In this document: one piece after another, positions 7,881 through 20,112 of the stretch | How positions within the stretch are numbered: position 1 is the first letter of the stretch | Layout: each line of letters starts with the position of its first letter | DNA from: Anaeramoeba ignava BMAN | Taxonomy: Eukaryota > Protista > Anaeramoebae | NCBI GenBank assembly: GCA_028826165.1 | Contig: JAPDFW010000063.1 | Span: 1,116,001-1,180,000, forward strand | DNA: 64,000 nt | Direction of reading: 5' to 3' | Made by a program: the position numbers and the translations under genes | The notes under the pieces: model-generated | Database searches by the model: none | Seen by the model: only the letters and a program-made list of their open reading frames with translations | Told to the model about the DNA's origin: nothing

Positions 7881-10595
7881 TCATTTCTTTTTTTCTTCTA
7901 ATAAAGTTTTAATCAATTCTTTTAATGGAGCTAATTCATTATTTTTAATTAATCTTTAAAATAAAAAAATTAATTAATTAATTTAAATTAAATTAAAATT
8001 AAATTAAAAATCGGAAAAAAAAAATTTACTTAAATTCTCTCACAAAATACATAAAATGTTTGAATGATGTATTTAAATGAGCTTCTTCTCCAAGATTTGT
8101 AATATCATCAAAGTGATTGTGATACATATGAGCATAAACTCGAAACAATCTTTTAAAAATTATTTTCACAATACTTTGAAAGTTTTTTGGAAATGAATAA
8201 CCTTTAATTATTTGAAATCAAAATTCAAATTCAATTTAAAATTAAAATTAAAATTGAAATTCAAATTAAAATTAAAATTAAAATTAAAATTGAAATTAAA
8301 ATTAAAATTAAAACAAACCCATTTTTGATGGGAAAACATTTTCATTATCTAAAAGATCTTGAATCCAATTCATTAAACGATCAATATAATCAGGAGCGGA
8401 TAATCTTTGTGGTTTTTTAATAGTTTGTCCATCAGCCCAATGATATTCATATTTTGGACCTGCTGACATTACTTTGCATGAATCAGTTGTACAAAATTCA
8501 GTAATTGTTCCATAAAGCATATTAATTTGATTGAAAAAATCAACAGCTATTATTTAATTATAAATTTAATTATAAATTTAATTATAAATTTAATTATTAT
8601 GTTAATTATAAATTTAATTGTAAATATAAATATAAATTTAATTATAAATATAATTATAAATTTAATTATAAATTTAATTATAAATTTATTTGTAAATTTA
8701 ATTATAAATTTCATTATAAATTTGATTATAAATTTCATTATAAATTTAATTATAAATTCATTCATTGGATAAATTTTTACATTATAAATTTAATTATAAA
8801 TTTAATTATAAATTTAATTATAAATTTAATTATAAATTTAATTATAAATTTCATTATAAATTTAATTATAAATTTCATTATAAATTTAATTATAAATTTA
8901 ATTATAAATTTAATTATAAATTTAATTATAAATTTAATTATAAATTTAATTATAAATTTAATTATAAATTTAATTATAAATTTAATTTAATTATAAATTT
9001 AATTATAAATATAATTATAAATTTAATTATAAATTTAATTATAAATTTAATTATAAATTTAATTATAAATTTAATTATAAATTTAATTATAAATTTAATT
9101 ATAAATTTATTTGTAAATTGTTTATAAATTTAAATATAAATTTTATTATAAATATAATTATAAATTTAATTATAAATTTGTTTATAAATTTAATTATAAA
9201 TATAATTATAAATTTAATTATAAATTTAATTATAAATTTGATTATAAATATAATTATAAATTTAATTATAAATTTAATTATAAATTTGATTATAAATTTA
9301 ATTATAAATTTGATTATAAATTTAATTATAAAATTAATTATAAATTTATAAATTTAATTATAAATTTAATTATAAATTTAATTATAAATTTATTTATAAA
9401 TTTAATTATAAATTTAATTATAAATTTAATTATAAATTTAATTATAAATATAATTATAAATATAATTATAAATTTAATTATAAATTTAATTATAAATTTA
9501 ATTATAAATTTAATTATAAATTTAATTATAAATTTAATTATAAATTTAATTATAAATTTAATTATAAATTTAATTATAAATTTAATTATAAATTTAATTA
9601 TAAATTTAATTATAAATTTAATTATAAATTTAATTATAAATTTAATTATAAATTTAATTATAAATTTAATTATAAATTTAATTATAAATATGATTATAAA
9701 TTTAATTATAAATTTGATTATAAATTTGATTATAAATTTGATTATAAATTTAATTATAAATTTAATTATAAATTTAATTATAAATTTAATTATAAATTTA
9801 ATTATAAATTTAATTATAAATTTAATTATAAATTTAATTATAAATTTCATTATAAATTTAATTATAAATATAATTATAAATTTAATTATAAATTTAATTA
9901 TAAATATAATTATAAATATAATTATAAATTTATTTGTAAATTGTTTTTAAAATTGATTATAAATATAATTATAAATTTAATTATAAATTTAATTATAAAT
10001 TTAATTATAAATTTGATTATAAATTTAATTATAAATTTAATTATAAATTTAATTATAAATTTAATTATAAATTTAATTATAAATTTCATTATAAATTTAA
10101 TTATAAATTTAATTATAAAATTAATTATAAAATTAATTATAAATTTAATTATAAATTTAATTATAAATTTAATTATTAATTTCATTATAAATTTAATTAT
10201 AAATTTAATTATAAATTTAATTATAAATTTAATTATAAATATAATTATAAATTTAATTATAAATTTAATTATAAATTTAATTGTAAATTTAATTATAAAT
10301 TTAATTATAAATTTCATTATAAATTTATTTGTAAATTGATTATAAAATTGTTTTTAAAATTGTTTTTAAAATTGATTATATATTTGTTGATAAATGTAAA
10401 TTGGAATAAAAAAAATAAATTACTATTAACTGCAAGCCATTCATTTAAATCTTCTCCTTCAGGAAGTACAACCGCTAAATGTAAATTTCCACTCCCAAGA
10501 GTCGCATCTGCAAATTTCTTTAATTCATATTGTTTTGTTCCTTCTTTAATTTTTCTTTGAGGCTTGAATGTTTTAGTTTTGCTAAAAAAACTCAT
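7881..10595 (-). CDS. MOB1: MOB kinase activator MOB1, 4 exons (10595-10424, 8546-8319, 8201-8030, 7953-7881), 214 aa
   Basis: Spliced translation gives [82 protein letters not shown]. All three introns are GT-AG and preserve frame. Confidence 0.97.
8555..10370. repeat. 12-bp tandem repeat (TTATAAATTTAA)n filling MOB1 intron 1 (8547-10423)
   Basis: Visible array bounded by a GTAATT donor and an AATAG acceptor on the minus strand. Confidence 0.95.
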
Positions 10596-11298: not shown

Positions 11299-14199
11299 CT
11301 AATATTCAAAAATAAATGTTCTAATTTGCATTGGTTTTAATTCAATCAAATCAACTTCATGATCTTGATTAATTTTTTCTTCATTTTTGTTTTGATTAAT
11401 TTTTTCCTCATTTTTGTTTTGATTAATTTTTTCTTCATTTTTGTTTTGATTAATTTTTGGATTTCTTTTTTGATCCCAATTCATTCTCTTTTCTAAACAT
11501 TTTTCAGGAGTTGTTAATAACGACAAAGTTGTTTCTTGAAAATTTTTTGGATGAAAACGACTTGTTGGACAAGAAAAAATTTGAGATAAAGAAATATTGA
11601 CAGATTGAGAAAGTTCTTGATGGTTATCTTTTTCATAAAGATGATGAAACCTCAAAATTCCTTGAGAAGAAGAATACTCATTTTCCATCAAAGAAAGCAA
11701 ATGAACATTTTTTGGAAGATCAACACAAAGAGAAGACAAACGGGTTGAATAGAGAATGATCCAAAATTTGGGGTCAATATTCGGCGTAATCGCATAAGCT
11801 ATTTTGATGGGATTATTCAACAAAAACCAAGAAAGATGTCTTGATTTTTCTGAGTTTTGGATCGAATCAAAAATGATCCAAATTTTAGATGAAAAGTAAG
11901 TGGAATCTGAAAGAGACATATTTAATCCGCACTCATCATCCTGAAGAGTACTTCTTGCGATCATGATTTCGAAATTTCCTGATTTGAGAGAGGCGATTCC
12001 GTGGGGACTATCAGTTATGAATGTGAGTCGTTGATTAGAATCTTGGATCCAAGCGGATGATGAAAAGGGATAGTAATTTTCCGAAATGGAAGTGTTCCGA
12101 TAAATTCGCTTCCGGATTTCCAAGTTATTGTTTGTGTGATATAATATTCCTTCTGAATTAATTGAGCTTTCAAAACGAGTTACTATTTCTTGGCCTTCTT
12201 GCAAATTTGGGCCTAATTTGTGCTCAAGCTCAATTACATTTCCTAGATCGCGATTGTCTGTTTTGAAAATCCTCCAAATCTGAATTATATTTGATGCGAA
12301 TTGCTGGTGGATTTCCTCGTAAAGATCTGTGGAAACGTAAGTAACGCTGTGAACTTTTGCAGAAAAAGGTTCTGCTTGTTGCAAAGGATGGAAAATATAA
12401 GCGCCTGAACGATTTGAAGAATAGTGGAAAATATTATTTTCAACATCGAGAATTTTGTTTGTGATTTTGCTTTCAATTGAATTAAGAAATCCTGTTTTTC
12501 CCGAAAAGGAAAGAGAATAGTATTTATTGCTAATGATGTAATTCTGTGTATTTGCTTGAGCTGGATAATTGATCATTCTTGTGATTTTTGTTGAGATTTG
12601 GATTTGTGATTCGCGTTGTCGTTTGCGAATAAAATGTGTTGTGAATCCTAAAGGAGGAAGTGTGGAAACAAAAGACACTTTTTGGATTTGCTTGTCATAA
12701 ACGCTTCTGACAGGTTTTGAGTCAGGCCCAAGTATTTCAATATCAAGATGTGTTAAAGAAAGATTGAATGAGAGGATTTGATTGGAAAGAGTCCAGCCTA
12801 ATGCGTTGAATAGGAGAATGGGAACAGATTTGTTTTGCGAAAGAAGCAATTCCATTTTGGATTGATTTAATGAAAGTGTTGGTTGTGGACTTTTCCATTT
12901 GAGAAAACTTTGCGAAAGAGAAGAAAGAAACGCATTTTGCGCAGATTTCTCGCCAGAAAGAAGATCGCGAATATACTGGTTTTGGTTCACATCAGGCGTG
13001 GATGTGCCTGTGATTGCATCATGATGAGAACCAATCGCGACTGCATTTCTTAAAGGCAAAATATTGCGAATCAAAGAAGAATTTCCGTTGATTTTCGGAT
13101 TATAAAGAATATTTGAAATTTCTGTCGAAAATAAATTCGCATTTGCAGATTGAATCATGCCTTTTAAAACAGGCCATGATGTGAAAAATCCAGTCCACCA
13201 ATAGGATCCTCTGAAGCAGTAAGGCAGAAAATCGTCATCTTGAATAACAGGATAAGATATTCTTTTGTTTTTGTTGATTCTCTCAAAATATTCACTAAGT
13301 GTTGAATAGTGAACAAGCACCCCATAATCAACAATGTTTGAATTGATGTATTCAACCAATTTGTCCATGTTTCTGAATTCCTTTTCTGGGTCTTGGAACT
13401 CAAAATCTCCTCCAAACAAATAAAGTACGTAGTTATGAAGAAACCACGAATTCTTTTTCTTCCAAGAATAAGTGATCATATCCACCGATTTGACAAGATT
13501 TTCATCCGTGATTTCTTCATTGAGTGGTGAATGATGTTCCCAATTAAACGGGATGGGGGAGGAATAAAGAGATTGGGGACAGACATGAGTGAGCATTTGA
13601 GTTTCTTGTCCCCAATTTGATGATCCTTTCCAAATAAATTCCATATGTTGAGTTTTCATGAATTTTTTCTTGGTTTCCCAAGGAATGCGATCAATCACAA
13701 ACGCATCAAAACACATTTGGGAAAAAAGATAAGGCGACATATTTGAGCTTCCAAAAGGATCAACATGGAAAGCAATTTTTGGAATAGCAAAATCACCGAT
13801 ATTTTCCTTAATCCATTGATGACCAATTGTCATTTGATTGATTATCATGTCATAATTCACTATTGCCTCATCATTCATCACATATCCTCCATGAACAAAC
13901 TCAAATTGATTTTTTTCGATTAATTTGATAACATTTGATTTCATTTCTTCATTTTGTTCTTTCCACCAATATTGAAAAAATACGTTTTCAACATATATAA
14001 ATTTGTGTTTGGGATTCGCAATTAAATCGTTCATTGTATTTGTTAAAATTTCTGATACATTTGATTTATAATATTCTTCTAAAGTATTTAACCATCCTGG
14101 ATCGTTATGACTATGTGGAACAATAAATACTTCAGTTAATTCGTTTGTTGATAAAAAAAATAAACTAATTAAAACAAAATGTAATGAAAAATTTATCAT
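11299..14199 (-). CDS. Lysosomal-type alpha-mannosidase, GH38
   Basis: Signal peptide, VPHSHNDPGWL zinc site, GGYVMNDEA, VDPFG nucleophile motif, YWWTGFFTS, HHDAITGT, SGAYIF and C-terminal LKPMQIRTF. Confidence 0.93.
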   Translation of the reverse strand: MINFSLHFVLISLFFLSTNELTEVFIVPHSHNDPGWLNTLEEYYKSNVSEILTNTMNDLIANPKHKFIYVENVFFQYWWKEQNEEMKSNVIKLIEKNQFEFVHGGYVMNDEAIVNYDMIINQMTIGHQWIKENIGDFAIPKIAFHVDPFGSSNMSPYLFSQMCFDAFVIDRIPWETKKKFMKTQHMEFIWKGSSNWGQETQMLTHVCPQSLYSSPIPFNWEHHSPLNEEITDENLVKSVDMITYSWKKKNSWFLHNYVLYLFGGDFEFQDPEKEFRNMDKLVEYINSNIVDYGVLVHYSTLSEYFERINKNKRISYPVIQDDDFLPYCFRGSYWWTGFFTSWPVLKGMIQSANANLFSTEISNILYNPKINGNSSLIRNILPLRNAVAIGSHHDAITGTSTPDVNQNQYIRDLLSGEKSAQNAFLSSLSQSFLKWKSPQPTLSLNQSKMELLLSQNKSVPILLFNALGWTLSNQILSFNLSLTHLDIEILGPDSKPVRSVYDKQIQKVSFVSTLPPLGFTTHFIRKRQRESQIQISTKITRMINYPAQANTQNYIISNKYYSLSFSGKTGFLNSIESKITNKILDVENNIFHYSSNRSGAYIFHPLQQAEPFSAKVHSVTYVSTDLYEEIHQQFASNIIQIWRIFKTDNRDLGNVIELEHKLGPNLQEGQEIVTRFESSINSEGILYHTNNNLEIRKRIYRNTSISENYYPFSSSAWIQDSNQRLTFITDSPHGIASLKSGNFEIMIARSTLQDDECGLNMSLSDSTYFSSKIWIIFDSIQNSEKSRHLSWFLLNNPIKIAYAITPNIDPKFWIILYSTRLSSLCVDLPKNVHLLSLMENEYSSSQGILRFHHLYEKDNHQELSQSVNISLSQIFSCPTSRFHPKNFQETTLSLLTTPEKCLEKRMNWDQKRNPKINQNKNEEKINQNKNEEKINQNKNEEKINQDHEVDLIELKPMQIRTFIFEY

Positions 14200-14278: not shown

Positions 14279-17200
14279 ATGATTTACTTTCTTCTTTTCT
14301 TCTTCTTTTTCATTTCTTCCTTTTGCTTTTCCCCAATGATTGTTACACCAAATAGTTATTAAATCAAATGAAACAAAAAAGAAAAAATTAATAATAATTT
14401 CAATTTTTTATTTTTTATTTCTTACTATTTTAAAAAAGATTATTCTTGGGATGGATCAGTTAATCCAACTTTTCCTTTAAGTGGACTTTATGATGATTAT
14501 TATAATTCTGATCCTTTAGTTCTTCCTCCTGGAAATTGGTATTTAGGAATATGAATTTGAATTTGAATTTTAATTTTAATTTTATATTTTATATTTTATT
14601 ATGAATTTTAATTTGAATTTGAATTTTAATTTTAATTTTATTATGGATTTGGATTTTATTATGGATTTTAATTTTAATTTTAATTTTAATTTTAATTTGG
14701 ATTTGGATTTGGATTTAAATTTTAATTTTATATTTTATTATGAATTTGGATTTGAATTTGAATTTGAATTTGAATTTGAATTTGAATTTGAATTTGAATT
14801 TGAATTTATATTTTATTATGAATTTGAATTTGAATTTTAATTTTAATTTTAATTTGGATTTGGATTTGGATTTTATTATGGATTTTAATTTTAATTTTAT
14901 TATGAATTTGAATTTGAATTTGAATTTGGATTTTAATTTGGATTTTAATTTGGATTTAAATTTTAATTTTAATTTTAATTTGGATTTGAATTTGGATTTT
15001 AATTTGGATTTGAATTTGAATTTGAATTTGAATTTTAATTTGGATTTAAATTTTAATTTTAATTTTAATTTGGATTTGGATTTGGATTTAAATTTTAATT
15101 TTAATTTTAATTTTAATTTTAATTTTATTATGAATTTGGATTTGAATTTGAATTTAAATTTGGATTTTAATTTTAATATGAATTTATATTTTAATATGAA
15201 TTTGAATTTATATTTTGATTTTAATTTTAATTTGAATTTTAATTTGGATTTGAATTTGGATTTGAATTTGAATTTGAAATTGGATTTTAATTTTATTATG
15301 AATTTGAAATTGGATTTTAATTTTGAATTTTGATTTTAATTTTGATTTAGGGATTGGAACGAAACAAACCATGATACTGCAAATTTAATTTTATTTTTAA
15401 TTTTAAAAAGTGGAGAAATTTTCAAACAAATTTGGGAACATTTGAAATGATGAATGATTCAGATGGAAATCAATTTGGTTGGAGATTTATTGGAAATGAT
15501 TACCCTTCAACAGGTTATTTTTCAACTCAAAAACAAACAATATAATAATTTTAAATTTTTTCCAAAATTGTTTTCACTTTTATTCTTTTTGTTTATTGAT
15601 AGATTGGGAAGCAAGAGGTGATTTTTGGCAAGGAAGTTCTGGATTGAATTGGGCAAATTTAGGTAAATTTCTTCCATTCCAAAAAAAAAATATTTTGGAT
15701 CATTTTTATTTTACTTCTTTTTATTAGGAACAAATAGTGCCTTGCATTCAACAGGAGGTGGAAATCTTGGAAACGTAAGATTTAAATGTTTAGATTCTGA
15801 AAAATTAATTTTTAACAAAAAAATTTTATTCATCTATACCTTTTAGGGTCAAGCAGTTGTAAATTAAAAAATCAATCAATTTAATTCAAAACAAAATAGT
15901 TTTTTTTTAAAAAACAAATTTTCATTTAGTTATGTAAATTTTTATCAAGAATAACCCAATAAAAATATGGAATATTAATTGATAGTATTCCAAAAAAAAA
16001 AAAAGGTTTGAAAAATAGTTGGTCACTTGATTTTAGAACTGGAGATTCAAATGATTTAGTTTTAATTGGATATTGTGATCATTTATCAAATCCAAATGCA
16101 AAATCAACCTCAACAGATTTTCATTTTCAAACTGCAACCATTCATACAAGTTAGTTAATTTTTATTTCTTTCTTTTATTTAATTAAAAACAAATTATCAA
16201 AAAAAATATAATAGAATCTGGAGCTGATAGAGTTTATGTAAGAGATATTTCAAGAGCAGCAATTGATTTAGGGAATGGAGCAAATGGAAGAACAGATACA
16301 GTTGATGCAACAGATGGTTCAATATTAAAATAAATATTAAATCAAATATTAAAATAAATATTAAAATAAATATTAAATTAAATATTAAATCAAATATTAA
16401 ATTAAATATTAAATTAAATATTAAAATAAATATTAAATCAAATATTAAATCAAATATTAAAATAAATATTAAATTAAATTAAATATCAAATATTAAAATA
16501 AATATTAAATTAAATATTAAATTAAATATTAAATTAAATATTAAATTAAATATTAAATTAAATATTAAATTAAATATTAAATCAAAATATTAAAATCAAA
16601 TATTAAAATAAATATTAAATCAAGTATTAAATTAAATATTAAAATAAATATTAAATCAAATATTAAATCAAATATTAAAATAAATATTAAATTAAATATT
16701 AAATCAAATATTAAATTAAATATTAAATTAAATATTAAATCAAATATTAAATCAAATATTAAATTAAATATTAAATCAAATATTAAATTAAATATTAAAT
16801 CAAAATTAAATCAAATATTAAATCAAATATTAAATTAAGTATTAAATCAAATATTAAATTAAATATTAAATTAAATATTAAAATCAAATATTAAATTAAA
16901 TATTAAATTAAATTAAATCAAATATTAAATTAAATATTGAATTAATTATATTTGAAGGTGATGATGTTATTGCTATTCATGGAAATTCTCATGATTTTAG
17001 AATATTTGGAGGAGCAGGAAATGATGTAGTATTTTGGTATATTGATGAAAATTTACAAAGTACAGCATATTTAGGCCCAAACTTTTTTGGAACTGGATCA
17101 TGGGGAAGTGCATTATGGAGAGATTCGGATACAGATAGATTAGTTCTTGTAATTCCAACATCAACAGAAGTTATTGAAGCAGGTTCAACTCCTGCTGGAA

Positions 17201-17750
17201 AATTAAGAGTTGTTGGAGTTGATTCAAGTTATGTTGTCGATACTCCTACTGAAGATGATGTTTATGCAAGATATTGCATTACTTGTGGTGTTAGCTCAAC
17301 TGTAAGATGCTTTCTCATTTTTCAAAATTAATATTTATTTCTAAATTCATTCAACCCTTTTTGTGATTTTGTTCCATTTTGATTTTTTAGTCAAGAAAAA
17401 CTCTCATTTTAGAATATCGAGATATTTCGGATCAAATTTTGACAGGATATTTTTATGTCACAGATTTCGAAGAAATTCAAGTTGGGGTTGGTCAAGGTGC
17501 AAAAGTTTATGAAATTGATGATGTAAATGGTCATTTAAAGTAAGTTATTTTCTTCTTAAAAATAATTCCTTTCCTTTTATTCAAAAATAAACACAAACAA
17601 TATTTTAGTTATAATTCAAATCTTCAACCTTTGGAAGAACCAAATTTTCCAAGTCAATATTGTCAACCAATTATTGTCTCAAACTCAAATATTTTGGAAA
17701 ATCAGATTTATTTTTTTGTTTTTGGGTTTTTACTTTTATTTTTACTTTAA
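14279..17750 (+). CDS. Secreted, putatively GPI-anchored protein with RTX/beta-roll-like Gly-Asp motifs; 13 exons, 436 aa (absent from ORF track)
   Basis: Hand-built exons 14279-14354, 14439-14538, 15351-15378, 15411-15513, 15603-15662, 15728-15774, 15847-15858, 15930-15933, 16006-16149, 16215-16316, 16958-17301, 17391-17539, 17609-17750 give one stop-free 1311-nt frame. N-terminus MIYFLLFFFFFISSFCFS; internal TGDSNDLVLI, SGADRVYV, DGDDVIAI, FGGAGNDVVF; C-terminus IYFFVFGFLLLFLL*. Confidence 0.8.
14552..15345. repeat. Mixed hexamer repeat (AATTTG/AATTTT/GATTTG) filling intron 2 of the 13-exon gene
   Basis: Visible array inside GT-AG intron 14539-15350. Confidence 0.9.
16321..16945. repeat. 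12-bp repeat (AAATATTAAATY)n filling intron 10 of the 13-exon gene
   Basis: Visible array inside GT-AG intron 16317-16957. Confidence 0.9.
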
Positions 17751-17853: not shown

Positions 17854-19641
17854 TCAAACATTTTTCTTTAATTCAAATTGATATTGATATTGATTTTGAT
17901 TTTTAAATTTGTTAATTAATAAATCAAATAAATTTGGATTTGTTTGATTTAATTGAAAATAATCAATTCCAATTTGAATTTCGTCAATAATTTCTTGTGT
18001 AATTTGAATTTCATCTTTAATTTGATTTGAATAAATCCAATATTCTAATATTTGAAATGATTTATTACTTAATTCACTATAATCTGTAACTTTATTAGAA
18101 GTATCTTCAGTTACAGATAAAAACATTCCTCGATATAATTCACTTCTCATTATTAATATTAATTTAGGAAATTTATATTGTTTTTCTTTTCTTTCAATAA
18201 TAAAATCATTTTCATTTTCATTTAAATAAATTCTTTTCATTGTTTCTTCAATTTTTTCATTGGAGTTTATAATTTCTTTAATTTCAGAATATAATATTGG
18301 ATTTATAATTCTGTTTGAATAAATCATTTCAAATATTTGATTTGATTCTTTTATTGATTTTTTTGAAATAATTTCTTGAAGTTTTTCAATTTCAATTTGA
18401 TTTTGATTTAATCTATATTTCAATATTAATTTATGAGCTTTGATTATTTCTCCATTTTTTGTTTTAAATGAAATGTTGCAAAATTCTTTTCTTTCAAATA
18501 GTTTTATCAAATCTTCTTCAAGATTAGAAAAAGAAGGAGAATAATAAAGGAATGAATTTTGATATCCACAAGAAAGATGATAATCGGAAATATCTTCATT
18601 AAATCTTAATTTAGGAAGTTCAATTTGAATAGGAATTAATTGATTATTTGTATCTCCAGTTCCTAATTCGCCATGAGAATTACCTCCAAATCCTATTAAT
18701 TTTGAATTGGAAGTTAAAATCAAAGTATGTTCATATCCACAAGAAAAATCAAGAATATTATCATCATTTTCAAATAAAGATGATTTGATTTCAGTAAATT
18801 CATAAGTATCTTTATTTTTTCCAAGTCCATTATATTCACAATCTCCGCATGAATAAAGTTTTCTTTTTGGATTTTGATTTTCATTTTCGATCAACATTAT
18901 TGAATGTAAATATCCACATTGAATATCAATTATTTTGCCTTTTGGAATATTTTGTATTTTGGTTAATTTTTTGATTTTCCAATCTTCTTTTCTTGATTTT
19001 CCTAATCCAATTTGTTCCCATTCATTATTTCCGCATGCAAATAATTCTTGATTTGAATTTAAAAGGAAAACATGTTCTGAAATATTTCCTGAAAATATTT
19101 TAGAAACATTTTTCATCATTAAAATTGGTTTTTTTGTTTTTTGGATTGATTGAGAACCAAGTTGACCATAAGAATTTGAACCAATTCCATAAACATTTTG
19201 ATTTGAAGTTAATAAGTAAATTGATTTTCTTCCAGAAACAATATCTTCAATTATTCTATCATTTTTATCTTCAATTAATGATGAAATATTGATAAATTGA
19301 TTTGGATTTTTTGGATTAATATCTTTTCCTTTGGCAAATACATTTCCTTCTAATGTTAAAATAGCTTCATTTTGTTCACCAACAGATACTTTTTGAATAT
19401 TTTCTTCAATTTGGATTTTTTCAGGATTTTGATTTAAATCATTTTCATCTAAATATTCTATTGCTTTTCCATTTTTAAAAAGGAAAATTATTGAAAAATA
19501 ACCTGTTGAAATTTGTTTAATTTGATTTTCATTTTCATTTTCATTTTCAAATTTAAATTGAATTGGTTTTGTTATTCTTTGTGGTTTATTTTTGATAATT
19601 TTTGGTGATTGATTTGAACCAAAAAATAAAATTTCATTCAT
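17854..19641 (-). CDS. RCC1-repeat beta-propeller plus C-terminal BTB/POZ protein (copy 1)
   Basis: RCC1 motifs GSNSYGQLG, CGYLHS, CGYEHTLIL and GGNSHGELG; BTB starts FCNISF..IKAHKLIL, with a second BTB-like unit DFIIE..FPKLILIMRSELYRGMF. Confidence 0.9.
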   Translation of the reverse strand: MNEILFFGSNQSPKIIKNKPQRITKPIQFKFENENENENQIKQISTGYFSIIFLFKNGKAIEYLDENDLNQNPEKIQIEENIQKVSVGEQNEAILTLEGNVFAKGKDINPKNPNQFINISSLIEDKNDRIIEDIVSGRKSIYLLTSNQNVYGIGSNSYGQLGSQSIQKTKKPILMMKNVSKIFSGNISEHVFLLNSNQELFACGNNEWEQIGLGKSRKEDWKIKKLTKIQNIPKGKIIDIQCGYLHSIMLIENENQNPKRKLYSCGDCEYNGLGKNKDTYEFTEIKSSLFENDDNILDFSCGYEHTLILTSNSKLIGFGGNSHGELGTGDTNNQLIPIQIELPKLRFNEDISDYHLSCGYQNSFLYYSPSFSNLEEDLIKLFERKEFCNISFKTKNGEIIKAHKLILKYRLNQNQIEIEKLQEIISKKSIKESNQIFEMIYSNRIINPILYSEIKEIINSNEKIEETMKRIYLNENENDFIIERKEKQYKFPKLILIMRSELYRGMFLSVTEDTSNKVTDYSELSNKSFQILEYWIYSNQIKDEIQITQEIIDEIQIGIDYFQLNQTNPNLFDLLINKFKNQNQYQYQFELKKNV

Positions 19642-19677: not shown

Positions 19678-20112
19678 ATTTTAATTTTAATTTTAATTTT
19701 AATTTAAATTTTGATTTTAATTTTAATTTTAATTTTAATTTTAATTTAAATTTTAATTTTAATTTTAATTTTAATTTTGATTTTAATTTTAATTTTAATT
19801 TTAATTTTAATTTTAATTTTAATTTTAATTTTAAATTTGAATTTTAATTTTAATTTAAATTTTAATTTTAATTTTAATTTTAATTTCAATTTTGATTTTA
19901 ATTTTAATTTTAATTTTAATTTTGATTTTGATTTTAATTTTTGATTTTAATTTTAATTTTAATTTTGATTTTGATTTTAATTTTAATTTTAATTTTAATT
20001 TTAATTTTGATTTTTAATTTTAATTTTAATTTTAATTTTGATTTTAATTTTAATTTTAATTTTAATTTTGAATTTTAATTTTAATTTTAATTTTAATTTT
20101 AATTTTAATTTT
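19678..20112. repeat. (TTTTAA)n hexamer microsatellite between RCC1-BTB copies 2 and 1
   Basis: Visible array filling nearly the whole spacer. Confidence 0.95.

Follow-up and report, generated by a model that had tools for sequence, protein, structure and literature searches.

An intron-rich gene of bacterial ancestry for a predicted β-helix surface protein in the nuclear genome of Anaeramoeba ignava

Region IV of MpAFP/MpIBP, the ice-binding adhesin of Marinomonas primoryensis (Protein Data Bank (PDB) entry 3p4g), is a Ca2+-dependent, right-handed parallel β-helix with Gly/Asp-rich turns, built from regular 19-residue repeats and belonging to a cell-surface protein. RTX β-rolls (PF00353) are known from serralysins, from blocks IV-V of CyaA and from 9cse, an RTX-like domain of an Aeromonas adhesin. 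Among eukaryotes, the A-domains of Candida glabrata Awp1 and Awp3b (7o9q/7o9p) display a parallel β-helix on surface proteins with a glycosylphosphatidylinositol (GPI) signal. In the amoeba Anaeramoeba ignava BMAN, 612 bacteria-derived genes have been published (Jerlstrom-Hultqvist et al. 2024, PMC11550330). Here we analyze a gene of this organism, located on the + strand at positions 14279–17750 of a 64,000-nucleotide stretch of contig JAPDFW010000063.1 (positions 1,116,001 to 1,180,000), to which we refer as the window and in which all coordinates below are counted. We consider it probable that this is a single-copy nuclear gene derived from bacteria, which encodes a Ca2+-type β-helix equipped with eukaryotic export and GPI-type signals and which has gained 11–12 introns.

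The gene was originally predicted, from the DNA sequence alone, as a hidden one that splices into a stop-free frame. The window is eukaryotic in character and 77% A+T, with islands of 30–37% G+C between tracts of 1–15% G+C, and its list of open reading frames (ORFs) contains no long ORF over 14279–17750. We rebuilt the gene independently from splice-site anchors and arrived at figures identical to those of the original prediction, namely 13 exons on the + strand, 1311 nucleotides (nt), 436 amino acids and one terminal stop. By our own estimate, a random codon at the composition of the gene would be a stop with a frequency of ~0.076, and an open frame of 436 codons is thus not expected by chance. 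All exon pieces match, collinearly and at profile positions 61–461, a profile that we made from 22 full-length bacterial relatives. Contrary to the original view of a hidden gene, it is annotated publicly as the hypothetical protein M0811_06940 [Anaeramoeba ignava], with 413 residues and 12 exons. We retrieved this entry, referred to as P0155 below, in a profile search seeded with the exons. No short public proteins containing exon 11 were found.

Database searches were run exon by exon and with P0155, and the 436-residue protein was compared in local scripts only. Exon 11 (16958–17301, 114 residues) by itself matched 36 clusters among 1.84 billion representatives, with 41–58% identity and a best E-value of 1e-59. 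In a local blastp comparison the 436-residue model aligned with its nearest member, P0003, at 45% identity over residues 25–409 (E 1e-119). The family contains 189 proteins when searched with a full-length relative and 254 when searched with a profile; all are labelled 'hypothetical', and the named ones come from Polyangiales, Myxococcales, Myxococcota, Deltaproteobacteria and Acidobacteriota bins. The only eukaryotic match is the A. ignava gene itself, and the other detectable relatives are bacterial (A. flamelloides was not directly searched). A scan of one genome per species with two peptide patterns (8-row alignment), which is not exhaustive, located the family in 45 of 185,579 species genomes, mostly from Myxococcota; Peregrinibacteria, Hydrogenedentota, Sphingobacteriaceae, Aquimarina sp. 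Aq78, Gemmatimonadota and Acidobacteriota provide the other carriers. The family thereby spans at least seven bacterial phyla, compared with one eukaryotic gene. Its core of about 400 residues has the signature YSWDGSW ... LGPNFFG ... YCxxCG, and no Pfam or NCBIfam model exists for this domain. Bacterial members combine the core with SLH, Calx-beta, PKD and TSP3 modules or with type IX secretion system (T9SS) sorting tails, and start with signal- or lipoprotein-like leaders. Because these accessory modules and leaders point that way, the bacterial proteins are likely displayed outside the cell.

Several members have unusual arrangements. Some Myxococcota have two copies of the domain, arranged as a tandem in a single protein or encoded by two adjacent genes (L020:4265-7597, two ORFs in L006, and P0001). 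In the Myxococcales members P0014 and P0141, it is fused to Cys-rich repeats that correspond to the Pfam Dictyostelium repeat PF00526, an odd pairing with a 'eukaryotic' repeat. P0008, a relative with a low-G+C look, resides on a dense prokaryotic contig.

We next consider how the amoeba protein relates to this family. It retains 65 of the 73 columns (89%) that are conserved in at least 90% of the members, among them the four family cysteines (Cys-167, Cys-332, Cys-335 and Cys-408), and 10 of the 13 invariant Asp columns. In an unrooted tree of 63 rows, calculated with a quick IQ-TREE method, the amoeba row is placed inside a 38-row bacterial clade that is split from the other 25 rows at a support of 97. 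It has a branch length of 1.02, a Gemmatimonadota bin as a weak sister (support 86) and a highest identity of 53%. To enter this tree, a domain match had to span at least 330 profile positions in loci or at least 300 in fetched proteins; also left out were the fragments P0015, P0016, P0018, P0020, P0024 and P0027-P0036, together with P0001, P0002, P0004, P0007 and P0014. On its 1.44-Mb nuclear contig, the gene is flanked by genes for a GH38 mannosidase and an RCC1-BTB protein. Its composition is host-like, with a G+C content at third codon positions (GC3) of 12% and exons that are 68% A+T; the A. ignava BMAN assembly has a G+C content of 19.4%, intron G+C of 8.1% and 0.74 introns per kb (PMC11550330). 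The gene is present in a single copy, and no paralogues were found in its own genome (42.8 Mb, 147 contigs). A lateral bacterial origin was part of the original prediction, and with exclusively bacterial relatives, eukaryotic neighbours, host codon usage and introns, a transfer from bacteria into A. ignava is now well supported by sequence comparison. The retained columns, host composition, single copy and introns indicate that the transfer is old and the gene domesticated. Genes of bacterial origin have been published for A. ignava before, and the present gene documents such a case well; unlike the amplified genes in that set, it is single copy, and its added interest lies in intron density, microexons and apparent errors in the public model.

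We compared the predicted structures of a bacterial and the amoeba family member to known folds. The AlphaFold model of the P0003 core has a predicted local distance difference test score (pLDDT) of 91 and a predicted template modelling score of 0.92. In an exhaustive structural scan its best match was 3p4g_A (Z 14.8, 2.4 Å over 183 residues), followed by 9cse (Z 11.5), the CyaA RTX blocks IV-V (6sus, Z 10.5) and the RsaA S-layer protein (Z 10.1). The model of P0155 gave the same ranking, with 3p4g at Z 14.1 (2.6 Å over 186 residues), 9cse at 12.8 and 6sus at 10.8. Lyases, tailspikes and adhesins form a generic β-helix background at Z 8–9. Foldseek returned weak rows only against the PDB, with 9cse as the top match (best E 8.6e-3), and the neighbours in the ESM Atlas are HemolysinCabind clusters, in weak agreement. 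A parallel β-helix is thus predicted for both proteins. The original claim of RTX-like motifs holds in part. At the level of the predicted fold the likeness to RTX proteins is considerable (Z 10–13), but the protein falls outside the Pfam RTX family. It contains a single canonical GGxGxDxUx nonapeptide (GGAGNDVVF); the remaining turns follow a degenerate G..D-x-hydrophobic pattern with irregular spacing, and they form no tandem array. Unlike RTX proteins, it lacks any toxin, protease or lipase domain. There is also no C-terminal type I secretion signal, as the bacterial members use leaders, SLH modules or T9SS tails and the amoeba copy a eukaryotic-type signal peptide. The closest fold relative differs as well: identity to 3p4g is 17–20% with no sequence-level match even by family profile, the repeats are irregular rather than regular, and our family adds a Trp-rich N-terminal segment and, in bacteria, N-terminal leaders in place of type I secretion. 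The likeness in fold, here predicted, does not imply ice binding. Judged by these models, the domain resembles a Ca2+-type β-solenoid at the fold level.

Both ends of the amoeba protein carry putative sorting signals. The N-terminus begins with a hydrophobic, signal-peptide-like stretch. At the other end, 27 residues follow the last family cysteine and are absent from the bacterial relatives read. This extension consists of small residues (VSNSN), a 6-residue polar spacer and a 14-residue hydrophobic end, after which nothing follows. Hydropathy and inspection thus agree with the earlier proposal of a signal peptide combined with a GPI-type tail, with small residues in front of a hydrophobic segment and no cytosolic residues behind it. 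In the AlphaFold 2 model of P0155, the tail region forms a helix (residues 393–412). By its anatomy, the tail is a better fit to a GPI signal than to a membrane-spanning segment, and GPI anchoring of the product is plausible. Such anchoring appears feasible because the A. ignava genome encodes Gaa1 (218 bits), Gpi16 (228 bits), a C13 peptidase (Peptidase_C13, 80 bits) and PIG-A (145 bits). The Gpi16 gene shares the contig of our gene outside the window (G000:C64:1365829-1367656), where three matched pieces, one of them crossing a TAA stop, suggest that it contains introns. The Awp1 and Awp3b A-domains, which match at Z 9.9–10.0, have no sequence relationship to our protein and are of independent origin. 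Yeast Awp proteins end up linked to the cell wall, and this amoeba is not known to possess one.

The exons, all on the + strand, can be followed along the family profile. Exon 1 (14279–14354) contains the first ATG and ~19 hydrophobic residues, with 11-residue hydropathy windows of 2.3–2.9. Exon 2 (14439–14538) encodes YSWDGS ... LPPGNW and matches profile positions 61–107 with 28 bits. It is followed by intron 2 (14539–15350), of whose 812 nt nearly all are a (GAATTT)n microsatellite. The short exon 3 (15351–15378, DWNETNHDT) ends at a GC donor and is separated by a predicted 32-nt GC-AG intron (intron 3, 15379–15410) from exon 4 (15411–15513), which encodes WRNFQTNLGTF ... FGWRF (profile positions 116–151, 34.7 bits) and is in part skipped by the public model. 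Exon 5 (15603–15662) is again a collinear family-profile match, and exon 6 (15728–15774) ends with GGGNLGN, extending to 15787 in the public model. Two microexons come next, one of 12 nt that is shared with the public model (exon 7, 15847–15858) and a predicted one of 4 nt that is absent from it (exon 8, 15930–15933), where TTAT lies between ag and gtaaat. Exon 9 (16006–16149, SWSLDFRTG ... TIHT) matches the family profile, and exon 10 (16215–16316, SGADRVYVRD ... GRTDTVDATD) scores 47 bits and carries Ca-turn-like motifs. Intron 10 (16317–16957, 641 nt) is filled by decamer-like repeats made of A+T only. Exon 11 is the largest and the best match (169 bits), with GGAGNDVVF, LGPNFFG, TDRLVLVIP and YCITCG. 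Exon 12 (17391–17539) encodes RKTLILEY ... FEEIQVGVG ... VYEIDD (64.5 bits), and exon 13 (17609–17750) the C-terminal family cysteine (QYCQ) and the 27-residue extension, with the stop at 17748–17750. The features named at the outset, that is the hydrophobic N-terminal stretch, a hydrophobic tail running to the last residue, Gly/Asp-x-hydrophobic units and YCITCG, are all present. Eleven introns are GT-AG and intron 3 is GC-AG; ten are short (32–89 nt), the two long ones (introns 2 and 10) are repeat-filled, and 10 of the 12 fall within the 5' half of the coding sequence. The intron 2 microsatellite (14547–15342) comprises 796 nt and 132 GAATTT copies with 80% matches, and shows a G-only GC skew of +1.0 over ~700 nt. 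The repeat tract of intron 10 (16317–16957) has a G+C content of ~2.5–7%.

Two places in this model depend on unusual splicing. At the junction of exons 2–4, the GC-AG path scores 79.0 bits against the family profile versus 49.0 bits for the best GT-only path, and exon 3 with its 32-nt GC-AG intron is the sole in-frame, family-like solution. The nucleotides directly following the GC donor (15379–15384) encode the near-invariant Ala-Asn of the family. A version that retains this Ala-Asn scores 502 bits, compared with 490 bits for the GC-AG version, and the 26-nt interval that would then have to be removed begins with TT and has no canonical donor. Between exons 6 and 9, the best of 67,027 enumerated GT-AG paths is the one with the 12-nt and 4-nt exons (54.5 bits; runner-up 47.2), and the score falls to 32.0 bits when every exon is required to have at least 15 nt. 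The 4-nt exon restores the frame and yields a gapless match to the GPDVLVF strand of the family.

The public model, which we could regenerate exactly from the window, has 12 exons with GT-AG introns only. It starts at the second methionine (Met-20, 14336) and consequently has no signal peptide, and it dodges the 4-nt exon through the longer exon 6. That this model represents the true mRNA, with two lineage-specific non-homologous loops, neither a 4-nt microexon nor a GC-AG intron, and the upstream ATG perhaps still in use, is a possibility that we take seriously, even if we regard it as rather unlikely. It requires canonical splice sites only, and the annotation pipeline behind it included mapping of RNA sequencing data (PMC11550330); GC-AG introns are rare, accounting for 20 of 32,108 in the A. 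ignava genome (PMC11550330), and so are 4-nt exons. Yet the public model replaces the conserved WRNF ... FGWR stretch and the GPDVLVF strand by unrelated residues, scores 440 bits against the family profile where the 13-exon model gains 50 bits (490), and has a pLDDT below 50 exactly in the two swapped segments (residues 35–54 and 112–122), with the remaining core mostly at 77–98. The family comparison would thus favour the 13-exon junctions over the public ones by a moderate margin, and the public gene model appears to be in need of correction, lacking the signal peptide and containing two doubtful junctions. The tag M0811_06940 does not occur in the examined part of the supplement text of PMC11550330. 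The TT at the start of the Ala-Asn-sparing interval also allows for a reading in which the gene, transferred long ago, is in decay, having recently been disabled at this splice donor and no longer producing a functional protein. The long branch, the loss of some Ca-site Asp residues and the missing EukProt transcript ORF in the gene's cluster are in line with it. We consider such decay unlikely, given that all 13 exons are free of stops in spite of a stop-prone composition, that 89% of the conserved columns are kept, that both acquired sorting signals, the signal peptide and the GPI-like tail, are undamaged, and that an in-frame GC-AG alternative is available.

An origin of the gene other than transfer into the amoeba, be it contamination, an assembly chimera or an ancestrally eukaryotic family that moved to bacteria, could be argued from the unrooted tree and from the amoeba row being one long branch. 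It is extremely improbable for a gene with 11–12 spliceosomal introns, exons of 68% A+T, a GC3 of 12% and eukaryotic neighbours on a 1.44-Mb contig, whose family is found in at least seven bacterial phyla and in one eukaryotic gene. We therefore rejected bacterial contamination and eukaryote-to-bacteria transfer on the basis of the introns, the host composition, the GH38 and RCC1-BTB neighbours and the phylum spread. Instead of serving as a binding module, the β-helix could have enzymatic activity on glycans of bacteria or algae, for example as a polysaccharide lyase, epimerase or hydrolase. In favour of this are the many structural matches at Z 8–9 to pectate or alginate lyases, epimerases and tailspike depolymerases, a Trp-rich N-terminal segment, and the Arg, His and Asp residues that are invariant across the family. 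These enzyme matches lie within the generic background, however, and well below the Ca2+ β-helix and RTX structures at Z 11–15; no catalytic-domain family was detected with Pfam or NCBIfam, and the domain is fused only to modules for adhesion or anchoring. An enzymatic role consequently seems quite unlikely to us. Several observations weigh against our overall interpretation of a domesticated, surface-displayed Ca2+-type β-helix protein. PF00353 reaches 13.3 bits with exon 11 and 13.8 bits with P0155, short of the gathering cut-off of 23, and neither exon 11 nor the family profile matched any PDB chain by sequence. Three of the 13 invariant Asp residues are replaced, all in N-terminal coils, and an intact family-like frame requires a rare GC-AG intron plus a 4-nt microexon. 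The sole sequencing run that contains the stretch is not listed as RNA, and the annotated protein is alone in its 90% cluster, which has no EukProt transcript-derived ORF, whereas the cluster of a neighbouring gene has one. Finally, a comparison of gene neighbours across the 45 bacterial loci gave no functional hint; no neighbour is conserved, and the only candidates were shadow ORFs and a cluster of long frames at 8 loci that has no Pfam match.

Bacterial genes that have settled in eukaryotes are usually intron-poor. Our gene has 12 introns in the 13-exon model, or 11 in the public model, in 1.3 kb of coding sequence; the genome mean is ~2.1 introns per gene (32,108 introns in 15,022 genes), and the mode of intron length is 76 nt (PMC11550330). 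Each of the two flanking genes consists of one long ORF, in accordance with the few introns originally noted for the neighbours. We searched for introner-like copies with two intron stretches, neither of which has a second copy in the genome, and the tested introns are thus not introner-like elements. Since the gene is of bacterial origin, all of its introns would post-date the transfer.

The adjoining gene on one side (11299–14199, − strand) is an intronless GH38 α-mannosidase of 966 residues with a threefold NQNKNEEKI repeat at its C-terminus. It shares a 90% cluster with a EukProt Anaeramoeba ignava protein; the transcript-derived EukProt representative of this cluster has 948 residues. On the other side (17854–19641, − strand) lies a single ORF for a protein of 595 residues with RCC1 repeats and a BTB domain. 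Two intergenic regions of the window, 10000–10300 and 19700–20100, have a G+C content of just 1–4%, which is extreme even by the standards of this genome.

We propose that the gene reached the amoeba by lateral transfer from bacteria, in which its relatives form an unnamed family of secreted or surface-anchored proteins. The core of ~390 residues would fold into a right-handed parallel β-helix, stabilized by Ca2+ in an RTX-like manner, with G-x-x-G-x-D-x-hydrophobic turns stacked along the solenoid. After the transfer, the sequence would have drifted to host composition, a eukaryotic signal peptide would have replaced the bacterial leader, and a GPI-type attachment signal would have been added behind the last family cysteine. 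The 11–12 spliceosomal introns would have been gained, two of them becoming swollen by microsatellites. The product may then take the secretory pathway and become GPI-anchored on the plasma membrane or on a symbiosome-connected membrane, where it might act as a Ca2+-dependent, adhesin-like binding module and not as an enzyme. Such a module is the likeliest role among those that we considered, if a tentative one, because of the surface-anchoring partners in bacteria, the adhesin and S-layer fold relatives, the four conserved cysteines and the lack of a catalytic family. The originally suggested role as an adhesin or lectin for contact with symbionts or prey is an attractive conjecture. Sulfate-reducing symbionts live inside A. 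ignava, in a network of membranes that opens to the exterior. The most specific version of our proposal, a GPI-anchored, Ca2+-dependent β-helix receptor on the symbiosome-connected membrane that binds Desulfobacteraceae symbionts or prey and is encoded by a gene that gained all 12 introns after transfer, is very unlikely to be correct in every part. None of the 45 genomes matched in the two-pattern scan belongs to a Desulfobacteraceae or Desulfobacter-like organism of the symbiont type.

For an amoeba that houses symbionts, a bacterial-type binding module displayed at the surface would be a reasonable candidate for contact with bacteria. The gene also offers a clean natural record of intron gain, of microexon formation and of eukaryotic sorting signals grafted onto a bacterial fold. 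If all 12 introns, including those that delimit the 4-nt and 12-nt microexons, were indeed acquired after the transfer, this would be among the densest documented intron gains in a gene of bacterial origin. For the bacterial family itself, mostly found in Myxococcota and lacking a Pfam model, our analysis provides a first handle on uncharacterised surface proteins.

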